Assembly: GCF_000143415.4 (NCBI RefSeq) | Contig: NW_003314268.1 | Location: 1,131,247-1,195,246 of the forward strand | Direction of reading: 5' to 3' | DNA length: 64,000 nucleotides | Source of the DNA: Selaginella moellendorffii | Taxonomy: Eukaryota; Plantae; Lycopodiophyta | Shown: in pieces, positions 1,705 to 42,447 of the stretch | Layout: each line of letters begins with the position of its first letter | Position numbering within the stretch: position 1 is the first letter of the stretch | Program-made: the position numbers and the translations under genes | The notes under the pieces: generated by a model | What the model was told of the DNA's origin: nothing | The model's input: only the letters and a program-made list of their open reading frames with translations | Databases searched by the model: none

Positions 1705-3130
1705 TTTTCTCATAAACCCTAATGTGCCATAAGTTTTAAAATGAAATTAAGGGGCATCAAATCAGAAACATTAAGTTAAAGGTTATTAACCATATCTTGC
1801 TTCAAACTCATTGGCTTTATTACTATTAAATACTATAGAGGCATTAGAAATACTTCCATATATAACTTTTTGGTCAGAATACTTTTATATAAAATGTTAT
1901 ATGATTTTTATATTAAAATTTTAAATATATGACTTTACTATAAAAAATTCTGGAAGATTGGAGCCACTTTCGCAACTAATCCATAGTTTTATTTTATAGA
2001 ACTATTTTGTGTTTTTAATACTATAGTGAACTTGCTAATAATTGCAAAATATTTAAAACTTTAAAGTATATATATTTAATAAATATTTAGTTGTGTGATA
2101 ATAGATAATGCGAAGTGGTAGAAGACTAGACAAGTTGTTTGCACTTTGGGACCAAATACAACTCGAAAAGCAAGAAAAAAAAATTAATTAAAGAAGAATT
2201 AACAAGGAAAACATACATTGCCAACGTTGCCTCGAGTGTGTCTGCCTTCTTTTACCATCCGAAATTCTTCATCTCACACAGCCCAAATGCCTTAAAGTAG
2301 TATTTCAATGGCTACAGTTGCAAAAAAAAAAAAAAAAAGGAAAAAATAAGAAAGTAGTAAAAACACTAACCATATTACAAAGTCATGATAAGTTGAGGTT
2401 TCAAACTTTGACTGACTTGAGATAGCGTCGATAATAGTTGTCTTGGAGTAACTGCTTTTGAATCTTTTTTTAATTAACGCAAGATCAAAAAATAAATCAA
2501 CTAACAAAAAACAAATTTACATAAATTTTTTTTAATGCTTATACATATATAATCCTTAAACATTAAGAAATTAATTTGTATTTAAAAATGTTTAGATAGA
2601 ATTATAAAGATAAATATCTTTTTAATTTTCTCTTATATACAAAATTATTTATATAGTTATATTATTCAATAAAACTTCAAGAATATGGAAATAATAAATT
2701 AAATATATAAATCTTGAAAAGCTTGGTTACCTATTTTCATGCATTGCTTTACCATTTCCATAATACAAACTCAATATGGTATTCTGATATATATAAATAA
2801 TTATCCAACCCAATAATCACTAGTACAATATAAAAGATATGGACCAAAATGCCAGCAATTTAATGGAAATTAAACAGATTTGAATGAAAAAACGCAATGT
2901 GATTTATGAAAAAAAATCCTAGAGATGTGAAGTAATATAAAATTTTAATAACCAACAATAATTCTAGTATGAGATGATGTATTATTGTATACTCATATAT
3001 TTTTTATTTATAAATTTTATTAAACTTTAAAGTTTATTTTATAAATTCATCAAATTATTTTTCCGAGACTCATCTACATATATTAGATGTACTAATTATA
3101 TAAAAGCCTATTCTATAATTTCTTTAATTT

Positions 3131-4903
3131 TTATTCCCACTTTAATCTTCTTTTCCTCGATTCCACAAACCCACCAGTATGGAGTCTAATATAATCTGTA
3201 TGTATGTATTTATATGTCAGATATGATGAAAGAAAAACAAAATCAAGACTCGCCTGTGAAAAATGAGCTGCAATGCATGGTAATACAAGCAGCCCACTGC
3301 CTTCTCCAGCCTTCAAAGTTTCCACCACTGCAACGCTAACAGGCAGTGTTTTCTGCGATAAAAAAACTCAACTTCGGAGAAACCCCAATCTCGTGAATAA
3401 CACTACCTGGCTTGCAACAAGTATGACTGCTCGGGAGGATGCTTCGTCATCTTCCTTTGAGCCTGTTTTTATTAGTGATACGAGGAACATGTTTACTGCC
3501 AGGAACATGAAATGCAAAGCACTGCAACGAGGAAAACTATAAGAAATCATGAAACCATCTTAAAGCGAACTTACATTCCCAGAAAGAGTGCCGCAATCAA
3601 GTTTCTAGCATCCAATTGTAAGAGCAAAGACCTCGAAGAACTTATTTGCATCCAAGGTACCTACAAGCAATGGTAACATGAATGCGAAAAAGAAAGACAA
3701 AAACAGAGATCGACTTAAGAGAATCAATACCGAGCTAAGCAAGAGAGCGCTCGCAAACGAGATCTCCTCGCGGTGTCTGTCAATGGACTTGTGTCACGAC
3801 AAGTTAGAAAAAGCAAACGATTGAGGTTTCGACTTTAGTACCTCCGCGGGATGGTAGAAGCAGAAAACTTCTCTTAGCAGCTTTCCAATCGCGAAAGGCA
3901 GCACCAGCGTCTGGACTAAGCTCCGGAAGAGCTTACTGGCAGGGAATTTGATCCCGAGCTTTCCAATCCACAGAGAAACTGATACTGGCATCTGCATCAG
4001 CTTAAGCAATTACTCGATCAAATGGTTAAAGGGAAAAGCTTGATTACCGTGAAGACTGCTAGCAAGTTGGACGATATCGTGAGCGCCAGTGCAAGTGCCT
4101 TGTTTGCTCCAGCAAGCTGGGAGCACATTTCAGACTTTAGTCTAAAGCTAAAGTCCAAAACAGCACAAGACTTTACCTGAGTGAGCGACACGCCAGTCGA
4201 GAGTGTTGTTGGTGCGCAGCAAAAGATTGCAAGGCCTAGCAATCACATTCGATCGATCCATCAAAGCTTTCAAATCAAATCAAAACTCAAAAGTGATAGA
4301 ACTGTCATTACCAGTGACAAGCTCCTTAGGGTTTAGCTTGATTTGCATGACGAGCAAAGCAGCAGCAGGAGTAATAAACAGAATAGAAATCTAGAAAAAA
4401 GAAAGAAAGAAAGAAAGATCATAGAAAGCAGGAACAATGCATAGACTATGCTTTACCAGTCCTTGCAAGGCAAACGGCCATGCCTCAAGCGCTTTGTTGA
4501 TATCCCCGTCCTGCAAAGTAAATCCTGAAAGTCAAAATAAGTCAAGTCAAGAAAAGTCAATATGGTCAAGTCAAAACGTCAATGCTGACCAGACAGGAGG
4601 AATATGCCCGCGGTGGCCCATCTCGAGAGGCCGAGGTGTTGAGCGAACTGTCCGGGCCTGGGCTCGAGCATTCCAATACTCATCCCACCAATGAGAGCTA
4701 GAGAGAACGAAGAAATCAAAGTGGAGATGATAGATCCAATCAAACTTACCCAGTGACACGAAGTTCTTGCTCACGAATCGCTTGATCTCTTGTCGAGACA
4801 TTGATGCCGCGGCAATGACCCTGCGATTGAGCTTGGATTGCCGCTTGGATTGTGTCCATGGCCGCCCAGTGGCACCCACGAGTGAAACGCAGAGATTCTC
4901 CAT
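3131..4903 (-). CDS. BASS4: Bile acid:sodium symporter family protein, BASS4-like, probably plastid (multi-exon)
   Basis: GLAIFCCAPTTLSTGVSLTQ, AGANKALALALTISSNLL, VILVASQKTLPVSVAVV, LLVLPCIAAH; basic Ser-rich N-terminus. Confidence 0.82.
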
Positions 4904-5495
4904 ACCTAAAAGGTTTTAGAAAAATAGGATGTTTGAAGATTCTTCCAAGAAGACAAATTACACTTTACTCTTTTTTATAAAAGTTTATTTTGAATATTTT
5001 GTCTAAATAGCACGAATAAAAACAGCCTTTCATCAGTAATTGGTCCAGTTCTTCGAGGGTTTTGTTCTTGACACTACGTTCTTCGAGGGTGAAGACAATA
5101 CTAGAGCTTTGTTCTTGCCACTACAAGCACCACAAGCTGTTGAAAGAGCATTGGAAGTAAATATCTCTCACAGCTTGCTCGCGAAGAGCTGCTGTGGTGA
5201 TTGATTTATAAAAAAAAACCAGGGCTCGAGCTTGCCACCAACGAGAAGAGGTCAAAGTCGAAAATAGATTCAACCAAACTTACCCAGTGAAACTAAGATA
5301 TTCTCCAGATCTAAGAGATGTTTGAAAATTCTTCCAAGAACAATGAATGGACAAAACTTATTTCCTTTGGTTTATGTACAAGAATCTCTCTCGACCGAGA
5401 ATCGATCTCTCGGTCGCCAACGCCAAGCTTGCTTGCTTCCCAAAGCTCTGGCCAGCAAGAAAGACGAAGAGAGAAAAAAAGAGTTCCAGATCCTC

Positions 5496-5865
5496 TCACA
5501 CTGCCGCTAGATTGGAGGTGAAAGAGACGCCCTTGTAGCCCTTGTAAGCGTAGTAGGCTGTTCTTGACTGATAGATCCCGGGCATGAAAACGAGGCCGCC
5601 AAGCACCATGAACGCAATCCCTGTGATTTTGGTGAGATCTAGCGGATCTGACGCTGCCTGGCTAGGAATTGGCGAGATGCCTACCGTGAGCTTTGTCGCC
5701 CCCGACTCTGTGATACATCATGACTAGCCCCGCGACCATGGACACGCTGCCCAGCCCCAGGCACGCCGCCGCCAGGGCGATCTCCTTGACTGGCGATCGG
5801 CCATCGATGGGCGTGCCCGCCGGCTCGTCGTCGCCGATGGAGAATGTGTGATCGACGTAGGCCAT
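5496..5865 (-). CDS. TMEM230/DUF872-family small membrane protein (2 exons)
   Basis: MAYVDHTFSIGDD...KEIALAAACLGLG...GGDKAHG | IAFMVLGGLVFMPGIYQSRTAYYAYKGYKGVSFTSNLAAV*. Confidence 0.8.
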
Positions 5866-6430: not shown

Positions 6431-7625
6431 GGCTTACGGCATAAACTCCTGAAACTCTATCATTTCAGCATTTGCCCAGTTCTGGGAAATACTCCAGGCC
6501 TACGAGTAGATGAAAGGTATACAGACGACAATCGTGGCATCGACTTCTATGATATTTGCGTACGAGACATCTATCCTGGATCAAGAAGCTTAATTTTTGT
6601 TTGATTCCATGCCGCAGAAAGATGTAATCTCATGGACTGCGCTCCTCGCTGCAAATGCCGGAAGACGGGACCTTGTGGAACTTGCAAGAATGATCTTCGC
6701 GGCCATGCCGCAGTGGAACTTGCTCTGCTGCACGACCATGATCCAGATGCTGGCTCAGGACCGAAGCTTGGATCAAGCACGCGATATCTTTGATCGATTG
6801 CCTGAAATGAACATCGTCGCCTGGACTGCAATGATCCAAGCCTACCTTCAAAGCTGCCAGTTCCACCAAGCGAAGCTCCTCTTCGATCAAATCCCATTCC
6901 TTCCCGATTCCACGCTCTCCACCTTGCTGATCTCTTCCCTCCCGCGAGACGCATCCATCGACGACGCCATCGCTATCTTCAACCGCAGCTCCCCGCGCGA
7001 TGCAAGAACCTGGGAAGCGATTCTCTCGGCCTTTTCGCATCTTACTCTCGTCCAGGAAGCTGACAGCGTCTTCTGGATCATGCCACAGCACTCGACGATC
7101 GAGCCATATTGGTATGGAGAACAAATGGTGCCTAGAGGAGGCGGCATGCTCTCAAGGAGTGCGTCTCGGCGCGTTCCAACAGGCAGCGTCCCTCACCGGG
7201 AGAGTATCGAAGAGCGCTCGAGCTTGATCTAGAGTTCCTCGACTCCGACTATACGCCGAGATCATCGTCGTGGAGCTCACAACGTCGAAGGTGTTCTCTC
7301 GAAGGTGTTCTTGGCGGGCTCGACACTGTCACTGGCAACGTATCCTTGCAGAAGTCCGTTGTAGGAGACGACGTTCCTCTTGGCCATGGCATCGAAGACA
7401 CTGCGTGCTTCGGTGTTATGCGTAGCACTGGAGGATGGTGGTTCAAGAGCAGGCTTCCCAGGCGGGCATTGCGTGAAAGATCTCGCGAGCGGCCTCCGGA
7501 TCGTGGTCCTGAGAGAAGCAGTGGATCATCGTGTTGAAAGAGATGGCATCCCGGTGCTCCATTCGATCGAAGATGAGCTTGGAGCTCGCGGTATCGGTTT
7601 GAGCGAGGAGAATGATCGTGCAAGC
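6431..7625. pseudogene. Rearranged PPR pseudogene, copy A: forward 5' fragment, then inverted middle fragment of the 19438-21999 gene
   Basis: 6597-7100 is near-identical to ~20000-20502; 7168-7625 is the reverse complement of ~20503-20975 with deletions and frameshifts. Confidence 0.85.
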
Positions 7626-13066: not shown

Positions 13067-15120
13067 ACTCCAAGCCTACAAGTAGATGAAACGTTATACT
13101 GACGACACTATTGTGGCATCGACTGCTATAATAGTTGCGTACGGGAGGTCTAACCTGGCCCACGAAGCTAAAGTTTTGTTTGCTTCCATGCCGCAGAAAG
13201 ATGTAATCTCATGGACTGCACTCCTCGCTGCAAATGCCAGAAGAAGGGACCTTGTGGAACTTGCAAGAATGATCTTCGCGGCCATGCTGCAGTGGAACTT
13301 GGTCTGCTGCACGACCATTATCCAGATGCTGGCTCAGGACCGAAGCTTGGATCAAGCACGCGATATCTTTGATCGATTGCCTGAAAAGAATAAGGCACCT
13401 AGACTGCACTGATCCAAGCCGCCAGTTCCACCAAGCGAACTATCAACTCCCGATTCCACGCTCTCCACCTTGCTGATCTCTTCCCTCCCGCGAGACGCTT
13501 CCATCGATGACGCCATCGCTATCTTCAACCGCAGCTCCCCGCGCAATGCAAGAACCTGGGAAGCGATTCTCTCGGCCTTTTCGCATCTTACTCTCGTCCA
13601 GGAAGCTGACAGCGTCTTCTGGATCATGCCACAGCACTCGACGATCAAGCCATATTGGTGTGGAGAACAAATGGTGCCTAGAGGAGGCGGCATGCTCTCA
13701 AGGAGTGCGCTTGGCGTTTTGGGTCGACTCCATGGCCCCCCGTAATGGTGCCGGCAAATGCAAGACGGGACTGTCCAATCACAACCAGCAACCGAAATAA
13801 ATGGTTGCTAGCAATGAATTTAGTTCTTCAGTACATACCGACACTATCAGTTTGCACAGGATCCCAGCAATGGAGTCACACATCTTGGCTTACGTGCTTT
13901 GTAATGAGCTAGTGAGTATGGCATTTGCAATGGTGGCTAAAGATAAACAGATCAACCGTGTCCTTGAAGAGCTTTTCTCTGAAGAGGTGAGTTTTCTTGA
14001 GTGTTGAAGAAGATCTCGGACCCGTATGATGACGAGCAAGATTTTGCGTTTCCAGACCTTCAAGCTGGAACAACGTGTACAGCCTGACTACTTCTTTGCT
14101 ACAGCCATTCTGAGACAGCGCTGCAATGGTGGCATTCCAGCACTTGGAGTCCCTCACTGGCACAACTCGATCGCTTCAGTCACCAGGCCGTGCTGAGCGC
14201 AAGCAGCGCTCATGGCGATCCAGGAAACACTGGTCGGCCTCGAGATGGTCTCAAACAGTTTCTTTGCTCGCTCCAACTCTCCGTTTTGCTGCAACCATGG
14301 CCGTGCAAGCCACGACGTCCTGCTCTCAGGTAGACTCGTGAAATATATACTCAGCTTCTTCCAGTTTACAGCCCCGGGAGCACACAGAGATCATCGTCGT
14401 GAGCGACACCTCACTCCTCTGGGGCCTCAGGACGAGCAGATAATTCTCGCAGCAGCCACCGAGAGCCGAGTCCCACGGCACAAGATCCCGCCGACGCATG
14501 CAGTAGAAAAGCTCCAGAGAATTTTTCAAGTCCGGCCCGAGAATTACACAGCCATCGTTTCGTTACACAACACGTTGTTGGCGGAGGCAACTTTCGCAAA
14601 GAACCGGCTTGCCTCAACGAGAAGATCATTCCGGGCATAGGCAAACACCATCGCGTTCCAACAGGCAGCGTCCCTCACCGGGAGAGTATCGAAGAGCGCT
14701 CGAGCTTGATCTAGAGTTCCTCGACTCCGACTATAGGCCGAGATCATCGTCGTGGAGCTCACAACGTCGAAGGTGTTCTCTCGAAGGTGTTCTTGGCGGG
14801 CTCGACACTGTCACTGGCAACGTATCCTTGCAGAAGCCCGTTGTAGGAGACGACGTTCCCCTTGGCCATGGCATCGAAGACACTGCGTGCTTCGGTGTTA
14901 TGCCTGGCTTGGGCATAGCACTGGAGGATGGTGGTTCAAGAACAGGCTTCCCAGGCGGGCATTGCGTGAAAGATCTCGCGAGCGGCCTCCGGATCGTGGT
15001 CCTGAGAGAAGCACTGGATCATCGTGTTGAAAGAGATGGCATCCCGGTGCTCCATTCGATCGAAGATGAGCTTGGAGCTCGCGGTATCGTTTAAGCGAGG
15101 AGAATGATCGTGCAAGCAGC
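13067..15120. pseudogene. Rearranged PPR pseudogene, copy B, containing an inverted CASTOR/POLLUX exon fragment
   Basis: 13086-13645 matches ~19910-20502; ~13890-13995 matches the reverse complement of ~22315-22415 (NELVSMAFAMVAKDKQINRVLEELFSEE); 14052-15120 is the reverse complement of ~20503-21616. Confidence 0.85.
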
Positions 15121-19437: not shown

Positions 19438-21999
19438 ATGAGACAGCCGCACGATTTGGTGGCGCTCTTGCGATCGTGCGGCTTCCATCGCGACCTGGCG
19501 CGCGGGAGGCGAATTCACGCACAGATCCTGTCGTGCGAGCACTGGCCCTCGAATTTCCTTGCGAATCACCTCGTCCTCATGTATGGCAGATGCAAGAGCG
19601 TCGAGGAGGCGTGCGAGGTCTTCAATGGCATCACCCAGCCGGATCTCTTCTCGTGTAACATCATGCTCGACACATTTGCCAAGAACGGGCAATTGTGTCA
19701 GGCAAAACACTTCTTTGATTTCATGCCCGCTCGAGATGCCATTTCGTGGAATGTGATAATCAAAATTTTTGCCTTAAGCGAGAATTTGCAATGCCTAGAC
19801 ACTGTGTGCGATCGGCTGCCTGCTTACGGCATAAACTCCTGGAACTCTATCATTGCAGCGTTTGCCCAGTTTGGAGAAATACTCCAGGCTAAGCTTTTCT
19901 ACGAGAAGATGAAACGTTGTACTGACGACACTATTGTGGCATCGACTGCTATAATAGTTGCGTACGGGAGGTCTAACCTGGCCCAAGAAGCTAAAGTTTT
20001 GTTTGATTCAATGCCGCAGAAAGATGTAATCTCATGGACTGCGCTCCTCGCTGCAAATGCCGGAAGAAGGGACCTTGTGGAACTTGCAAGAATGATCTTC
20101 GCGGCCATGCCGCAGTGGAACTTGGTCTGCTGCACGACTATGATCCAGATGCTGGCTCAGGACCGAAGCTTGGATCAAGCACGCGATATCTTTGATCGAT
20201 TGCCTGAAAGGAACATCGTCGCCTGGACTGCAATGATCCAAGCCTACCTTCAAAGCTGCCAGTTCCACCAAGCGAAGCTTCTCTTCGATCAAATCCCATT
20301 CCCTCCCGATTCCACGCTCTCCACCTTGCTGATCTCTTCCCTCCCGCGAGACGCTTCCATCGACGACACCATCGCTATCTTCAACCGCAGCTCCCCGCGC
20401 GATCCAAGAACCTGGGAGGCGATTCTCTCAGCCTTCTTGCAACTTAGTCTCGTCCAGGAAGCTAACAGCGTCTTCTGGATCATGCCACAGCACTCGACGA
20501 TCGCTTGCACGATCATTCTCCGAGCTCAAACCGATACCGCGAGCTCCAAGCTCATCTTCGATCAAATGGAGCACCGGGATGCCATCTCTTTCAACGCGAT
20601 GGTCCATTCCTTCTCTCAGCACCACGATCTGGAGGCCGCTTGCAAGATCTTTCATGCAATGCCCGCCTGGGAAGCCTGTTCTTGGACCACCATCCTCCAG
20701 TGCTATGCCCAGGCTGGGAATATCACCCAAGCACGCAGTGTTTTCGATGCCATGGCCGAGAGGAACGTTGTCTCCTACAACGGACTTCTCCAAGGATACG
20801 TTTCCAGTGACAATTTTGAGCTCGCCAAGAACACCTTCGAGAAAATGCCCGAGCACGACGTTGTGAGCTCCACGACGATGATCTCGGCGTATAGTCGGAG
20901 TCGAGGAACTCTCGATCAAGCTCGAGCTCTCTTCGATACTCTCCCGGCGAGGGACGCTGCCTGTTGGAACGCGATGGTGTTTGCCTATGCCCGAAATGGT
21001 TTTCTCGCCGAGGCAAGCCGGCTCTTCGCGAAAGTTGGCTCCGCCAACACCGTGCTGTGTAACGAGATGATGGCTGCGTATTCTCGGGCCGGGCTCGTCG
21101 AGAAATCTCTAGAGCTTTTCCACTGCATGCCTCGACGAGATCTTGTGTCGTGGAACTCGGCTCTCGGTGGCTGCTGCGAGAATGATCTGTTCGTCCAGGC
21201 GAGAAAAGTGTTTGACTTGATGCCTCAGAGAAGCGATGTGTCGCTCACGACGATGATTTCTGTGTGCTCCCGGGGCGGTAAACTGGAAGAAGCTGAGTAT
21301 ATATTCACGAGCATACCTACGAACCAGGAGAACGGCGTGGCCTCCACGGCCATGGTTGCAGCGTATGCTCAAAACGGAGAGTTGGAGCGAGCTAAGAAGC
21401 TATTTGAGACCATCTCGAGGCCGACCAGTGTTTCTTGGATCGTCATGATCGCTGCTTGCGCTCAGCACGGCCTGGTGACTGAAGTGATCGAGTTGTTCCA
21501 CAGTATGCCGGTGAGGGACTTCAAGTGTTGGAATGCCACCATTGCAGCGCTGTCTCAGAACGGCTGTAGCAAAAAAGCAGTCGAGTTGTATAAGTTGTTC
21601 CAGCTTGAAGGTCTGGAGCCGAGCGAGATCACTGTGCTGAGCGTGTTATCTGCCTGCAGCCGTGCTGGATTGCTGGCCGAAGGTCACGAGTGTTTCAAGT
21701 CAATACAAGCGGACGACCGGCTGAAAAAACTGATGTCACCGGAACATTACGCTTGCATGGTTGATCTTCTCTCTCGAACTGGAAACTTGTCCGAGGCCCG
21801 GGCTTTCATAGAAAGCATGCCTCTCGCTGCAAGTAGTTCTGTTTGGAATTCACTGCTGGGTGCTTGTGGAACTCAGAGTGAAAAGCTCCTGGGTATAACA
21901 GCTGCGCAACAAGCCATGGAACATCCGAACGCAAGATCCTGCTCGTCACCATACGCGGCACTCGCAAACGTCCACTGCATGGAACTAGATTTTTTATGA
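19438..21999 (+). CDS. PLS-class PPR protein with E domain, no DYW (organellar RNA editing factor type)
   Basis: Intronless 853 aa; many short S/SS-type repeats (DVISWTALL, NVVSYNGLL); L2/S2/E motifs VLSACSRAGL, HYACMVDLLSRTG, WNSLLGAC, SPYAALANV. Confidence 0.92.
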   Translation: MRQPHDLVALLRSCGFHRDLARGRRIHAQILSCEHWPSNFLANHLVLMYGRCKSVEEACEVFNGITQPDLFSCNIMLDTFAKNGQLCQAKHFFDFMPARDAISWNVIIKIFALSENLQCLDTVCDRLPAYGINSWNSIIAAFAQFGEILQAKLFYEKMKRCTDDTIVASTAIIVAYGRSNLAQEAKVLFDSMPQKDVISWTALLAANAGRRDLVELARMIFAAMPQWNLVCCTTMIQMLAQDRSLDQARDIFDRLPERNIVAWTAMIQAYLQSCQFHQAKLLFDQIPFPPDSTLSTLLISSLPRDASIDDTIAIFNRSSPRDPRTWEAILSAFLQLSLVQEANSVFWIMPQHSTIACTIILRAQTDTASSKLIFDQMEHRDAISFNAMVHSFSQHHDLEAACKIFHAMPAWEACSWTTILQCYAQAGNITQARSVFDAMAERNVVSYNGLLQGYVSSDNFELAKNTFEKMPEHDVVSSTTMISAYSRSRGTLDQARALFDTLPARDAACWNAMVFAYARNGFLAEASRLFAKVGSANTVLCNEMMAAYSRAGLVEKSLELFHCMPRRDLVSWNSALGGCCENDLFVQARKVFDLMPQRSDVSLTTMISVCSRGGKLEEAEYIFTSIPTNQENGVASTAMVAAYAQNGELERAKKLFETISRPTSVSWIVMIAACAQHGLVTEVIELFHSMPVRDFKCWNATIAALSQNGCSKKAVELYKLFQLEGLEPSEITVLSVLSACSRAGLLAEGHECFKSIQADDRLKKLMSPEHYACMVDLLSRTGNLSEARAFIESMPLAASSSVWNSLLGACGTQSEKLLGITAAQQAMEHPNARSCSSPYAALANVHCMELDFL

Positions 22000-37745: not shown

Positions 37746-38617
37746 CAAACAAAGAATGCTGCTTGATCAACCTGACCCCTCTAGCCATTAGTTAATAAGC
37801 CATAAGATAGAACTGATTACTAGAACCGAGCCATTGACCAAAGAGATGATGGACTCAAATAATACAGCATGGAAGCCTACCAAATCTCGTTCTGATCGAT
37901 AGCCAGTGATAGATGTGATTGCTTGGACTTCATTGCTGCAAAAAAATGCTGGGTGAGAGGGTGAGAGGGTGAGAGGATGATGGGTGAGAGGTGGGACATA
38001 GTGGCTTGGGCGACCATACTCCAATAGATGGAGCTCATGCTTCTCGGGCTCTTGTCACTGTCGGCGATGAGAGCTTCGATTGCAATTGCCCACGACACCA
38101 CATCACTCTGAGGCATTCGCTTGAAAGCATGCAAAACTGGGCATATGCTTGAAAAGTTTTCAGTCAAGCTGGTGTGATGGAAAAGGAGCCTGTTGGGATT
38201 AGGGGAGGAGAGTCAAGTGGTCTTTATCAGTTTACCGACTTCTGGTAACTGGGCTCACTCATTACACATTGAACTCTGCCGAAGAGGGACACCCAGGGAG
38301 GCGCGATGCTGCCCAGGGACGGAAACCCTGTCTCACGTCATCTATGACTGTCCAGCCGACATGCGTCTTTTCTTCCCCCAAGCTTTCATAAGCACCACAG
38401 ACGCAGCAGCGATGACAGCTTTATTCCTATGCGCCATGGAAAACTGAAGGACACTAGCAGTGTCAACGACGCAGAAAATCGTTTCTAACACATTTGCAAC
38501 TTGAAACAGTAATATTGTATTAATAGAATGCAAAATGGAGATGAGGTATGTTTCTCTACAAATCGGCACCAGAGAATGTTGTGGAAAAACTATTGACAGG
38601 TAAATCTGTGATCACGA

Positions 38618-40851
38618 TCAGAAATAATCGTTGCATGAGCAGATGCCATTTCTAAAGACGTGCAGTCGGCTAGCATCCCTGCATACAATTTCTCTGCCCT
38701 CAACCTTAGAGATTCTGGCAGTGGCATTGTGACAGTCATCACAGACCCTGAGATTCTTCACGATTCTTATAGTTGTCCCAGGCTTGGAGTTGATTAAGGC
38801 ACATGCAATAGCCAACTTTTCACTGTGCCCACACAAGGCATCTTCCTTGGCAACACCTTCATCACTGGGAAAAACACCATTGATATCGGCCACATAACCT
38901 TCCACCTTGATTTTCCCCATAACCTCGTCAACCTTGCATGCAACGTCTCGATACTGCGGGTGATCTTTGCGACCCACCACAAAACTGTGAACTTTCCCTT
39001 TGTCATCTGTCCACCATGTCTGCCCGGGCTTCTTCCACGCCCTCACATCTTTCCTTGCCCTCAAAACCTCGTCCCTCTCCTTCAGCATTCCAGAGCTCGC
39101 ATAGATCCCCGCCATGAGCACGTAAGCCGCGGACACCTCCTTGTCCAATTTCAGCAGCGATTCAAACGCCAGCCTCCCTACGTCAACTTTCTTCCACTTC
39201 CGGCACGCCCCAAGCAGCGTCCTCCACAGGATAACATCGGGTTCCAGGCCGTGATCGTCTCTCATGCTCTTGATCAGCTCCAGTGCTTCATCAAAGAGAT
39301 TTGCCCGCCCGTAAAAATCCACCATGCACGTAAAGTGCTCCAGAGTCGGAGCCACGCCGTAAACCAGATGCCGGAGTCCATCGAACAGGTCTTTCGCCAG
39401 TCCAATACTTCCGGTGTGACTACAAGCGGTGAGCGCGAAGATGATGGTGATACCATTAACCAGGCCCTTGGCATCCATGGCTTGAAACCGGGATAACACA
39501 CTCTCGTAGTCTCCTTGTTGGCTATACCCTGAAAGAAGCGCGTTCCAAGCGGCCGAGTCTCTCGAGCTCTCAGGAATGGAGTCGAAAGCTTCCTGAGCTT
39601 CCCACATGGCGCCACACTTTGCGTAGAAATCCACAACGCAAGTGCCCGCGACCGGATTGTTCCGCAGCTGATGGTTCATCTTGATCTCCTTGTGGAGTTC
39701 CCTGCCGAGTTCCAGTCCCATGACATTGCCACAAGCTCTGAGAGCCACAGCGTAGCTCGTAGCATTCAGCTCGCACTCGAGACGGCACCGGCTCAAGAGC
39801 TCCAGAGCAGCCTCGCTCCTGCCGTTTTCGACGTATCCCAAGAGCAATGCGTTCCAAGTCACGATGTTCCTCGGTGCGGAGATCTTGTCAAACACCGCGC
39901 GAGCACGGGGCAGGTCACAAGATTTGGCGTACATATCCACCAGCGTTGTCGCCACAAAGATGTCACTCGCAAATCCCCGCTCCTCAGCCTGGGCATGGAT
40001 CTCCACGCCTCTCTCCAAAGCCATCCTCTTCACGGCCCGTCCCTGGACCTGCTTGGGCTCCTCTTTGCTCGCCAAGCCCGCGCAAGCCTTGAGAGCCGCA
40101 ACAAAACTTCTCGCATCCGGCTCGCAGCCCGATCTGTCAGGCATGCACGAAAACAGCTCCAGGGCGAGCTCGTTCTCGTTGTTCTGCGCGTAACCAAGGA
40201 TCATAGCGTTCCATGCAACGACATGACCGTGTAGCATCTTGCGGTTTTCGTCCAGGACCTTCCGAGCGTCCTCCAGCTTACCACACCTCGAGTACATGGT
40301 GATTACCGCTGTTGCTACGTACTTGTTGAGGAGATGCTCGCTCGCAGCTCTGAAGTGAAGCTCCCTTCCTTTCGCTGGATCGTTGCATCGTTTGAGCTCC
40401 GCCAAAACCTGGTTCCTGGCTTCGAAGTGCGCACTTAGCTGCTTTCTCGGTGGAGCTTCGTCTTGTGTAATGGAAAGCGTGGGAGCTTTTTCTCGCTGAA
40501 TGCTGCTTGTGTGCCGGTTCTGGGGGTGCGCTTCATGGGCTGTTTGAGAATTCAACACCTTGACAGCTCCGGTCACTCCTCCAACAAAAGCTGCTCGGAC
40601 ACCGCTAGAACAACTTTTGGGGGGTTTTCCCAAAGATTCAAGCTTGGCCTTCAGAGACTCTGGACAGGAACTTATGTAGAGCCCTTCACCAGAAACTGAG
40701 TGCTTAAATTCTGGATACCCTTTCCACTGCAAGCAGGAGAAAACCAACACTAACTTCTACAAAACAAGATCAAGAAGAGGCTTACATTCTTGCCTCTGTT
40801 GTCCCACCAGAGGGTTGGATCTTCGAAAAAACTGAGCCACCGATCGCACAT
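38618..40851 (-). CDS. PLS-class PPR-DYW cytidine deaminase with N-terminal OSB-like PDF motif (exons 40851-40786 and 40726-38618, ~724 aa)
   Basis: PPR repeats; PG box KKPGQTWWTD, HSEKLAIA, NLRVCDDCH, CSCNDYF; exon 1 MCDRWLSFFEDPTLWWDNRGKN joins in frame through a 59-nt GT-AG intron. Confidence 0.88.
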
Positions 40852-40935
40852 TCTTTGCTTAGAAGAAAAACACCTCGAGTTAAACCCTAAGACCTATACT
40901 TTGTACTAAAAAACGGTAATCAAGGTAAACGTCCA

Positions 40936-42447
40936 CTATGAACTTAAGTTTTGTCCTTCGACATCACCTAATTGTTTGACAATCTCTTCCACTGCATCCT
41001 CGTCCTTCAAAACCGTCGTGTGTGTCTTCCCTTGAAGTTCCACCACCTTTACTTGTTGGTCCCCGACTTTTTTCCACGAATCCACCACCCATCTCAAGCT
41101 GCACAAGTTGATCGTCCCGTCTCCATCTCCATACTCCATCTTGGGCTGGTAATCAAATCCCTGTTTCTCATACACCAGAGTCTCCGGTGTGTCCACTCCA
41201 ACGCCAAAAACCAAGCTCACTGGAACCCCTGGAGCAGCCAGTTCTTCCAAGAGTCCGGGAACTCTCGTCTTGTAGTGCTCGTATCCCCTCGAGTACCCAA
41301 TATCGTGGAAGAAGTCCTCCAGATCCGTCGCCGTGTAATTCCTTGACGATCCCACCACCAGCGTCTTGTTTCCAAAAACTTTGGGCGATGGCAGCAGCCA
41401 AAGGTTGCTCTCGCTGCTCCTTTGCTCGTCTCGCAGCACGAGAGGATCCAGAAAGTTGGCCCCTTCGGTGTATCCAGAGGCAAAGACTCGCATCTCTTGG
41501 ACGGAGCCACCCCATGGAGCTGACACTGCGATGAAGCGATGGATGAATCTCTTCTTCCAGGTGGAGCTCTGTAAGTTGAGAAAGTGGAGCACCCAGAGAC
41601 CACCGAGGCTGTGAGAGATTAGCGTCACTGGCGTGTTCTTGTTTGATCTCGAGGCTTTCTCCACCAAGTTTTTCAAGTCTTGGAGGAACTGGAGTGCCAC
41701 TTCCGCTGCGTTTGGCCCCGGAGCGTAGCGAAAGTCGTATGGAGCTCCAAAGAGAGTTTTCTGGGACTCGTAGCCTTTGGCTTTCAGTGCTGCCACCAAA
41801 GAATTCATGTAGCCAGATAGAAACCTGGAAAGAAAACCAGCTCGTATCAATCAAACTAAATCTATGAAAACACGAACGAAACAAAGACTTCTTGCTTGGG
41901 CGGAAGCTATGGCGAGAGCAAACAAGCAAAAGAAACCTTCAAAAGAACTTTGTGTAAGAAGCAAGAGAGAACTTCTACCAAAGAACTAAGAGAAAAACGC
42001 AAGAATGTAGGAAGACTAACTAAGAGAAAATGATGGAAAAACTTACTTGAAGGTTGGATCGAGGTACTCCATCGTCTCGGTGGAACCAAACCCAGGAACT
42101 CTGGTCGTGATCCCAGGAGGATTGTGAAACTTCTTACTCCCGCCATTGTACTCGAGCCTTATCCTCTCGGCAAAGCATGGTGTGAATGGAGGAATGATGC
42201 CAAGAACATTGAGCCATAGCCGGAACCAATGCGAGAACCCAAAAGTCCTACACACAAAGCGACTACCATGATAATCTCCACCAAGCTTAACTTCCAGCTG
42301 GTTCCCTCCAGCTCCAGGCACCAAGATCACCGGAGAGAGCCTAGGTTTCCTAGAAGAGGAAAGCGAAGAACTTGGAGGAGTTGTAGCGGCCGAGGCAGCG
42401 ATCTGGAAGGAGAGAGCCATTGCCAGACATTCTAAAAGAAAACCCAT
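40936..42447 (-). CDS. LCAT1: Lecithin:cholesterol acyltransferase-like 1 / phospholipase A (2 exons)
   Basis: Signal peptide, PVILVPGAGGNQLE, LFGAPYDFRY, nucleophile SHSLG, YGDGDGTIN, catalytic His region KTHTTVL. Confidence 0.88.

Follow-up and report, generated by a model that had tools for sequence, protein, structure and literature searches.

Does an organellar RNA-editing factor of a lycophyte carry, at its very N-terminus, a module for binding single-stranded nucleic acid, and to what end? The question is raised by a pentatricopeptide repeat (PPR) gene of Selaginella moellendorffii. The gene lies on the minus strand of the window, the 64,000-nt stretch of genomic DNA that was analysed; coordinates are positions in this window. 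It encodes a PPR-DYW protein that begins with a PDF motif of the type found in OSB proteins (Organellar Single-stranded DNA Binding). Lycophytes and ferns edit thousands of sites, and their editing factors are hardly studied. The protein is most likely, on combined analysis, a factor for RNA editing to which a single-strand-binding module is tethered. By sequence it belongs with other PLS-PPR proteins of lycophytes and ferns that bear an N-terminal PDF, in a subfamily that is small and old. The fuller reading, on balance the probable one, is that of a nuclear PLS-class PPR-E-DYW gene for a site-specific C-to-U organellar editing factor, in which the tethered N-terminal OSB-type PDF acts as a single-strand binder, preferably of single-stranded DNA (ssDNA) at transcribed nucleoids.

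The gene has two exons.

Exon 1: 40786..40851, minus strand; 66 nt, 22 aa; start codon and first half of the PDF motif, RWLSFFEDPTLWWDNRGKN.
Intron: 40727..40785, minus strand; 59 nt, GT-AG, phase 0; interrupts the PDF motif three codons past WWDNR.
Exon 2: 38618..40726, minus strand; second half of the PDF motif, linker, PPR array, E motif, DYW domain and TGA.

The product of exon 1, with its ATG at 40851-40849, is MCDRWLSFFEDPTLWWDNRGKN. The intron donor is GTAAG at 40785; the acceptor reads ..TTGCAG, with its last base at 40727. Exon 2 opens at 40726 with WKGYPEFKHSVSGEGLYISSCPESLKAKLE, and the frame stays open until the TGA at 38618-38620. Splicing yields a protein of 724 aa. Upstream of the ATG at 40851, the frame is closed by a stop 10 codons away, and the 59-nt intron, if retained, puts a stop in the reading frame. 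The earliest in-frame Met of exon 2 is residue 165, within the PPR array; a complete protein therefore needs the ATG of exon 1. The first-pass annotation of this DNA had joined a 66-nt exon (ATG at 40851, donor at 40785) in frame to position 40726, and every one of these coordinates holds. It had also called the first exon hidden, which is not the case: a public RefSeq model from the other haplotype, P0001 (724 aa, S. moellendorffii, named 'putative pentatricopeptide repeat-containing protein At3g23330'), begins with 56 residues identical to those of the spliced model.

The N-terminus is the part of the protein that sets it apart.

PDF motif: residues 4-55, 40628..40842 with the intron included, minus strand; profile, alignment, AlphaFold2 (AF2) and Foldseek.

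A profile was built from 297 PDF copies, all from non-PPR (OSB-type) proteins. The spliced N-terminus scores 54.0 bits against it over HMM positions 4-56, the splice junction being spanned; 2000 shuffled versions of these residues reach 8.9 bits at most. An exhaustive phmmer search with residues 1-56 against 1.84 billion representative proteins gives 130 matches at E<=1e-3. The majority of the matched proteins hold 2-13 tandem PDF copies, mainly towards the C-terminus; several have an SSB/OB-fold Pfam match upstream of the PDF, and a name look-up of some matches includes annotations as OSB1 (Populus), OSB2 (Asparagus, Impatiens) and OSB3 (Striga). When word-index searches of proteins were made with the N-terminal part, the query's own cluster alone came back, and the exhaustive search was required. 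In an alignment of 66 PDF copies (A1), 10 of 12 invariant or nearly invariant positions (W5, P12, W15, D17, R19, K21, P27, D28, F29, L38, W39, P44) are retained; PDF itself reads PEF in this copy, and LW reads LY.

An AF2 model of the motif computed with A1 is confident (pLDDT 87.8) and shows a small alpha/beta module: helix 2-10, strands 15-17 and 29-31, helix 45-53. Foldseek searches of Swiss-Prot models give significant E-values only for the PDF regions of AtOSB1-4 (TM 0.72-0.77, E 2e-4 to 6e-4; predicted structures on both sides). No similar solved structure is returned by Foldseek against the PDB or by the PDF profile against PDB sequences. None of the Pfam models matches the PDF; both exon products and the 66 PDF copies gave merely stray weak matches. 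Phage 'gp49' clusters returned by an ESM Atlas feature search (0.76-0.81) were rejected, being under the tool's trust level and without support from Pfam. By profile score and predicted fold, the N-terminus is a true PDF motif of the OSB type, as the first-pass annotation had proposed from the letters. The OSB family is defined by a central SSB-like OB fold together with a C-terminal PDF; here Pfam detects no SSB domain, and the PDF is N-terminal. Lacking an OB fold, the protein does not belong to the OSB family.

The remainder of the protein is that of a PLS-class editing factor.

Linker: residues 56-118, 40439..40627, minus strand; predicted disordered.
PLS-type PPR array: residues 119-534, 39191..40438, minus strand; about 11 helix pairs; Pfam PPR, PPR_1, PPR_2 and PPR_3, and AF2.
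E motif: residues 535-593, 39014..39190, minus strand; Pfam PF20431 at 8.7e-08; ends in the PG-box-like KKPGQTW.
DYW deaminase domain: residues 632-724, 38621..38899, minus strand; PF14432 positions 1-93/93 at 1.3e-31.

The best Pfam scores in the array are 1.7e-36 (PPR_2) and 1.2e-34 (PPR). The full-length AF2 model shows a folded PDF, then a disordered stretch (pLDDT <50 over residues 60-118), about 11 PPR helix pairs with E1/E2 (116-581), and the DYW domain. In all, about 13 helix pairs are seen in this model. With its own predicted fold followed by predicted disorder, the PDF would therefore be a separate module on a flexible tether. HSE of the DYW domain is encoded at 38819-38827, CDDCH at 38729-38743, and the last three residues are DYF. 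The DYW region aligns with the solved PPR-DYW structures 9kfx (E 1.3e-42) and 7o4e, with HSEKLA and CxDCH conserved; a PLS-PPR/DYW body with intact HSE and CxxC, as first proposed, is borne out by this alignment and by the full-length Pfam match. Judged by these alignments, the DYW domain is of the ordinary RNA-editing type.

The two haplotypes allow the constraint on the gene to be estimated. The P0001 locus (L007, scaffold GL377618.1) is the other haplotype, with equal gene length and the same LCAT-like neighbour. The product of exon 2 is 97% identical to P0001 (683/702). The haplotypes differ at 51 of 2234 nt; one of these positions lies in the intron and none in exon 1, and all 56 PDF codons agree. 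The coding sequences differ by 30 synonymous and 20 non-synonymous changes, and the resulting dN/dS of 0.186 indicates purifying selection on the gene.

Is the fusion a single case? All long proteins with a single N-terminal PDF copy among the phmmer matches are PLS-type PPR proteins. At least five further S. moellendorffii PLS-PPR families have an N-terminal PDF, and the combination is also found in a clubmoss and in ferns:

P0019: S. moellendorffii; 947 aa; PDF-PPR with DYW.
P0070: S. moellendorffii; 910 aa; PDF-PPR, ends in an E motif.
P0101 family: S. moellendorffii; five members of about 495 aa; PDF-PPR with DYW.
P0120: S. moellendorffii; 917 aa; PDF-PPR, E-motif end, no deaminase.
P0127: S. 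moellendorffii; 914 aa; PDF-PPR, E-motif end, no deaminase.
P0106 and P0137: clubmoss Diphasiastrum complanatum; one or two PDF copies plus PPR.
P0071: fern Adiantum capillus-veneris; two PDF copies plus PPR.
P0121: fern Pteridium aquilinum; transcript fragment.
P0039: transcript contig of run SRR4210093; three PDF copies plus PPR.

The search for relatives that the first-pass annotation had suggested thus finds PDF-PPR proteins in both lycophytes and ferns. Its chimera of PDF and PPR-DYW stands as a fusion; as a one-off it does not, a small subfamily being present in Selaginella, Diphasiastrum, Adiantum and Pteridium. Two further S. moellendorffii RefSeq entries named 'uncharacterized protein', P0140 (1917 aa) and P0142 (1617 aa), have an internal PDF at residues 1017 and 728, respectively, followed by PPR repeats; they look like annotations in which a PDF-PPR gene is merged with its upstream neighbour. 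P0141, the RefSeq-predicted isoform X2 of the P0127 gene, is without PDF, and PDF-less forms may arise by alternative start or splicing.

The occurrence of the PDF on PLS-PPR proteins both with and without DYW argues against a special link between PDF and deaminase. It bears on the suggestion that the PDF steers the DYW domain to single-stranded DNA and that the enzyme deaminates DNA. All that speaks for this is that a cytidine deaminase carries an ssDNA-binding motif; against it, the domain aligns in full with the RNA-editing DYW domains of solved structures and has no special features, and the PDF is also found on the E-ending P0070, P0120 and P0127, in which there is no deaminase to be steered. 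DNA deamination finds no support here and is extremely improbable.

The intron gives a relative age for the architecture. A phase-0 GT-AG intron three codons past WWDNR, as in the window gene, is found in 4 of 4 Selaginella paralogues tested (54-70 nt). In the Diphasiastrum gene, the second PDF copy is interrupted at this site by a phase-0 intron of 222 nt. The PDF copies of the Populus OSB1 and Striga OSB3 genes are without intron. The intron position common to Selaginella and the clubmoss argues that the PDF-PPR architecture is older than the split between them. In a tree of 310 PDF copies, seven Selaginella copies cluster with a support of 0.66 and the others scatter. The motif tree cannot settle a single PPR-linked clade, so that it is the shared intron that speaks for a single origin. 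A wider claim may be ventured tentatively, and as a whole it is rather doubtful: that N-terminal-PDF PLS-PPR proteins are an ancient, undescribed class of editing factors, at least as old as the Selaginella-clubmoss ancestor and present in ferns too, in which the PDF recruits the factor to ssDNA or R-loops at transcribed nucleoids. If true, editing and transcription would be physically coupled in lineages with thousands of edited sites and no MORF helpers.

Is the first exon expressed as part of the PPR messenger? Four S. moellendorffii RNA runs were compared with positions 38300-41900 of the window. In run X1, a 562-nt assembled contig covers 40546-40726, omits exactly 59 nt and resumes at 40786; the gap is bordered by CT..AC on the plus strand, that is, GT..AG on the minus strand. 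The 40786/40726 junction, for which a check in RNA had been advised, is therewith seen as an exact splice in one contig. Coverage of the PPR body in the deep raw-read runs X8 and X9 is 0-1x. Most first mates there lie on the plus strand, and read direction on the PPR body is that of the reads of the neighbouring minus-strand gene. The PPR-DYW gene is transcribed weakly. Weak transcription is usual for PPR genes.

The neighbour is an LCAT-family (PF02450) phospholipase-like gene at 40936-41850 and upstream, minus strand, with its stop 85 nt before the PPR ATG; it is expressed about tenfold above the PPR gene. The X1 contig joins the 3' end of this gene to the spliced exons 1-2 of the PPR gene and carries the small deletions of the other haplotype at 40914-40933.

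Several observations weigh against the reading of the gene as an organellar editing factor with a working PDF, two from RNA and the others from the motif and its position. The sole junction-bearing contig extends to 41177, a position within the final coding exon of the LCAT-like gene upstream; being continuous with that gene, it leaves the PPR gene's own 5' end and transcript start undefined. In X8 and X9, of each of which about 12% was scanned, there are zero exon-1 reads. Within the motif, D28E and W39Y fall at nearly invariant columns, both being conservative, and the usual P-x-W is P-E-S. The PDF score of 54 bits is below that of most paralogues (63-80 bits), P0127 being lower still at 47 bits. 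The leader before the PDF is 3 residues long, compared with 8-27 in paralogues and 27-66 in the Diphasiastrum proteins. A PDF that starts at residue 4 leaves no room for a normal transit peptide, and organellar import is therefore only putative.

On the RNA points, the spliced exon could be read as read-through or 3'-UTR of the LCAT-like gene, foreign to the PPR mRNA. The reach of the contig into the upstream coding exon and the distance of just 85 nt between stop and ATG agree with this. Such a bridge is expected in any case, because k-mer contigs fuse overlapping transcripts and the locus is so compact. The PDF frame crosses the junction, with both halves matching the PDF profile; the intron position is kept in paralogues that have unrelated upstream neighbours; and there is no alternative start codon before the PPR array. 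Read-through is very unlikely.

The points from the motif bear on another possibility, that the PDF is here a decaying or neutral relic, the protein being an ordinary editing factor or non-working for want of a targeting peptide. The two substitutions, the loss of P-x-W, a score second lowest among the paralogues' full-length motifs, the short leader and the very low expression all fit a relic, as does the PDF-less isoform predicted by RefSeq for one paralogue (P0141). They are countered by the identity of the 56 PDF codons between haplotypes that differ at 51 nt gene-wide, by a whole-gene dN/dS of 0.186, by the conservative nature of the substitutions in a motif that AF2 folds confidently as the OSB PDF fold, and by the retention of architecture and intron from Selaginella to Diphasiastrum. 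A relic is improbable.

Comparison with known systems shows which parts are familiar and which are not. The PDF motif of Arabidopsis OSB1-4 was reportedly described by Zaegel et al. 2006, cited here through reviews (PMC6963530, PMC4166229). Like that motif, the present one has the signature of about 50 residues W..FF..P..WWDNR..K...PDFKH...GE.LW...P, at 33-39% identity, and a predicted small alpha/beta fold with TM 0.72-0.77 to all four AtOSB PDF regions. Unlike it, the present PDF is a single copy at the extreme N-terminus and not at the C-terminus, has no SSB-like OB fold beside it and has PPR-DYW attached; it is interrupted by a phase-0 intron, of which the two angiosperm OSB genes checked have none, and it reads PEF for PDF and LY for LW. 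With PLS-class PPR-E-DYW editing factors (At3g63370/OTP86 DYW, 7o4e; synthetic PPR-DYW, 9kfx) the protein shares the PPR array, the E motif, the PG-box-like segment and a DYW domain with HSE and CxDCH; it differs from them in the additional N-terminal PDF on a disordered linker, the absence of a recognisable transit peptide before it and the DYF end. Fusions of RRM with PPR and of MORF with RRM (PMC13386178) resemble it in uniting a repeat-type specificity factor with a second, unspecific nucleic-acid-binding domain in one chain; the domain added in that survey is an RRM, a MORF or a RanBP2 zinc finger.

The PDF is also found outside OSB and PPR proteins. It stands at the C-terminus of RNase H-like (RVT_3/RNase_H) proteins from Prasinoderma and marine samples (P0113, P0158 and P0159, with P0169 listed alongside), and in the protein fragment P0129 it stands beside the C-terminal domain of a SUV3 helicase. 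Attached to RNase H-like and SUV3 proteins of green algae, the PDF behaves as a mobile module on enzymes acting on organellar nucleic acids. These RNase H-like and SUV3 architectures lie outside the OSB literature consulted for comparison. In P0023 (Coptis chinensis, 1526 aa) a kinesin motor domain comes after three PDF copies; the protein is a merged model or another PDF fusion.

Among the top-ranked full-text results of the literature searches, from which subscription journals are largely absent, no paper was found that joins the PDF motif or domain with PPR, DYW, Selaginella or lycophytes. The one paper among them that names both 'PDF motif' and 'pentatricopeptide' is a review, and it treats the PDF in the OSB context only (PMC6963530). 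A 2026 kingdom-wide survey of domain fusions of editing factors makes no mention of OSB or single-stranded binding (PMC13386178); with no Pfam model matching the PDF, Pfam-based surveys are blind to PDF fusions. OSB surveys demand OB fold and PDF together (PMC13393729), so that PDF-PPR proteins would be passed over. The PDF-PPR combination is present in public gene models, and no description of it was found in the literature searched; the remark in the first-pass annotation that the architecture is not known from a characterised editing factor agrees with this.

What would the module do? Proteins of the PLS-PPR-DYW kind recognise, through the PPR array, an RNA sequence 5' of a target cytidine, which is deaminated by the DYW domain. 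When a PPR protein is bound to RNA, its N-terminus points to the 5' end of that RNA. In the present protein the array would likewise pick the RNA site and the DYW domain would deaminate the target C, as other editing factors do, and the PDF, on its tether, would bind single-stranded nucleic acid whatever the sequence. In the version preferred, the PDF may anchor the factor to ssDNA laid open at transcribed nucleoids, and editing would be co-transcriptional. A close second, nearly as likely, is that the PDF would strengthen, without sequence specificity, the hold on RNA lying 5' of the element bound by the PPR array. The version with ssDNA at the nucleoid is favoured because OSB PDF motifs are reported to prefer ssDNA, and because of the company in which the motif is found (OB-fold SSB, RNase H, SUV3). 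Support for single-strand binding comes indirectly, from OSB proteins: according to reviews, the AtOSB1 PDF motif is by itself enough to bind ssDNA (PMC6963530), AtOSB1 and AtOSB2 favour ssDNA over dsDNA or RNA (PMC4166229), and mitochondrial R-loops are limited by OSB1 (PMC8330923).

A different role is conceivable, and a general one: the PDF of PPR proteins might bind RNA and not DNA, providing unspecific affinity or keeping the RNA upstream of the cis-element unfolded, a built-in helper where MORF-type partners are absent. Its N-terminal place on a flexible linker in all PDF-PPR proteins seen would suit this, the N-terminus facing the RNA 5' end; the motif also occurs on the fragment with the C-terminal domain of SUV3, an RNA helicase, and other fusions of RNA-binding domains with PPR are documented (PMC13386178). 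Against RNA stands the reported preference of AtOSB1 and AtOSB2 for ssDNA (PMC4166229). Taken as a whole, this alternative is possible, though unlikely.

A conserved, putative single-strand-binding module in some editing factors is a testable handle on how substrates are found, and on whether editing is tied to nucleoid and transcription. The range of the PDF is widened beyond OSB proteins to PPR, RNase H-like and SUV3-type proteins. The engineering of PPR-DYW editors could profit from such a small natural addition, if it alters their affinity or localisation.

Two minor observations concern gene neighbourhoods. At locus L004, the P0120 PDF-PPR gene follows an LCAT-family gene at a distance of 57 nt (3001-5811 and 328-2944, respectively). 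A duplicated pair of LCAT and PDF-PPR genes, in the window and at L004, was considered and rejected: the two LCAT genes are without detectable similarity, and the arrangement looks like coincidence. In the window, further PPR-like coding stretches are present at 19846-21975 (plus strand), 6504-7565 and 14053-15058. These three give no PDF match, and their identity to P0001 is 21-27% over most matches.

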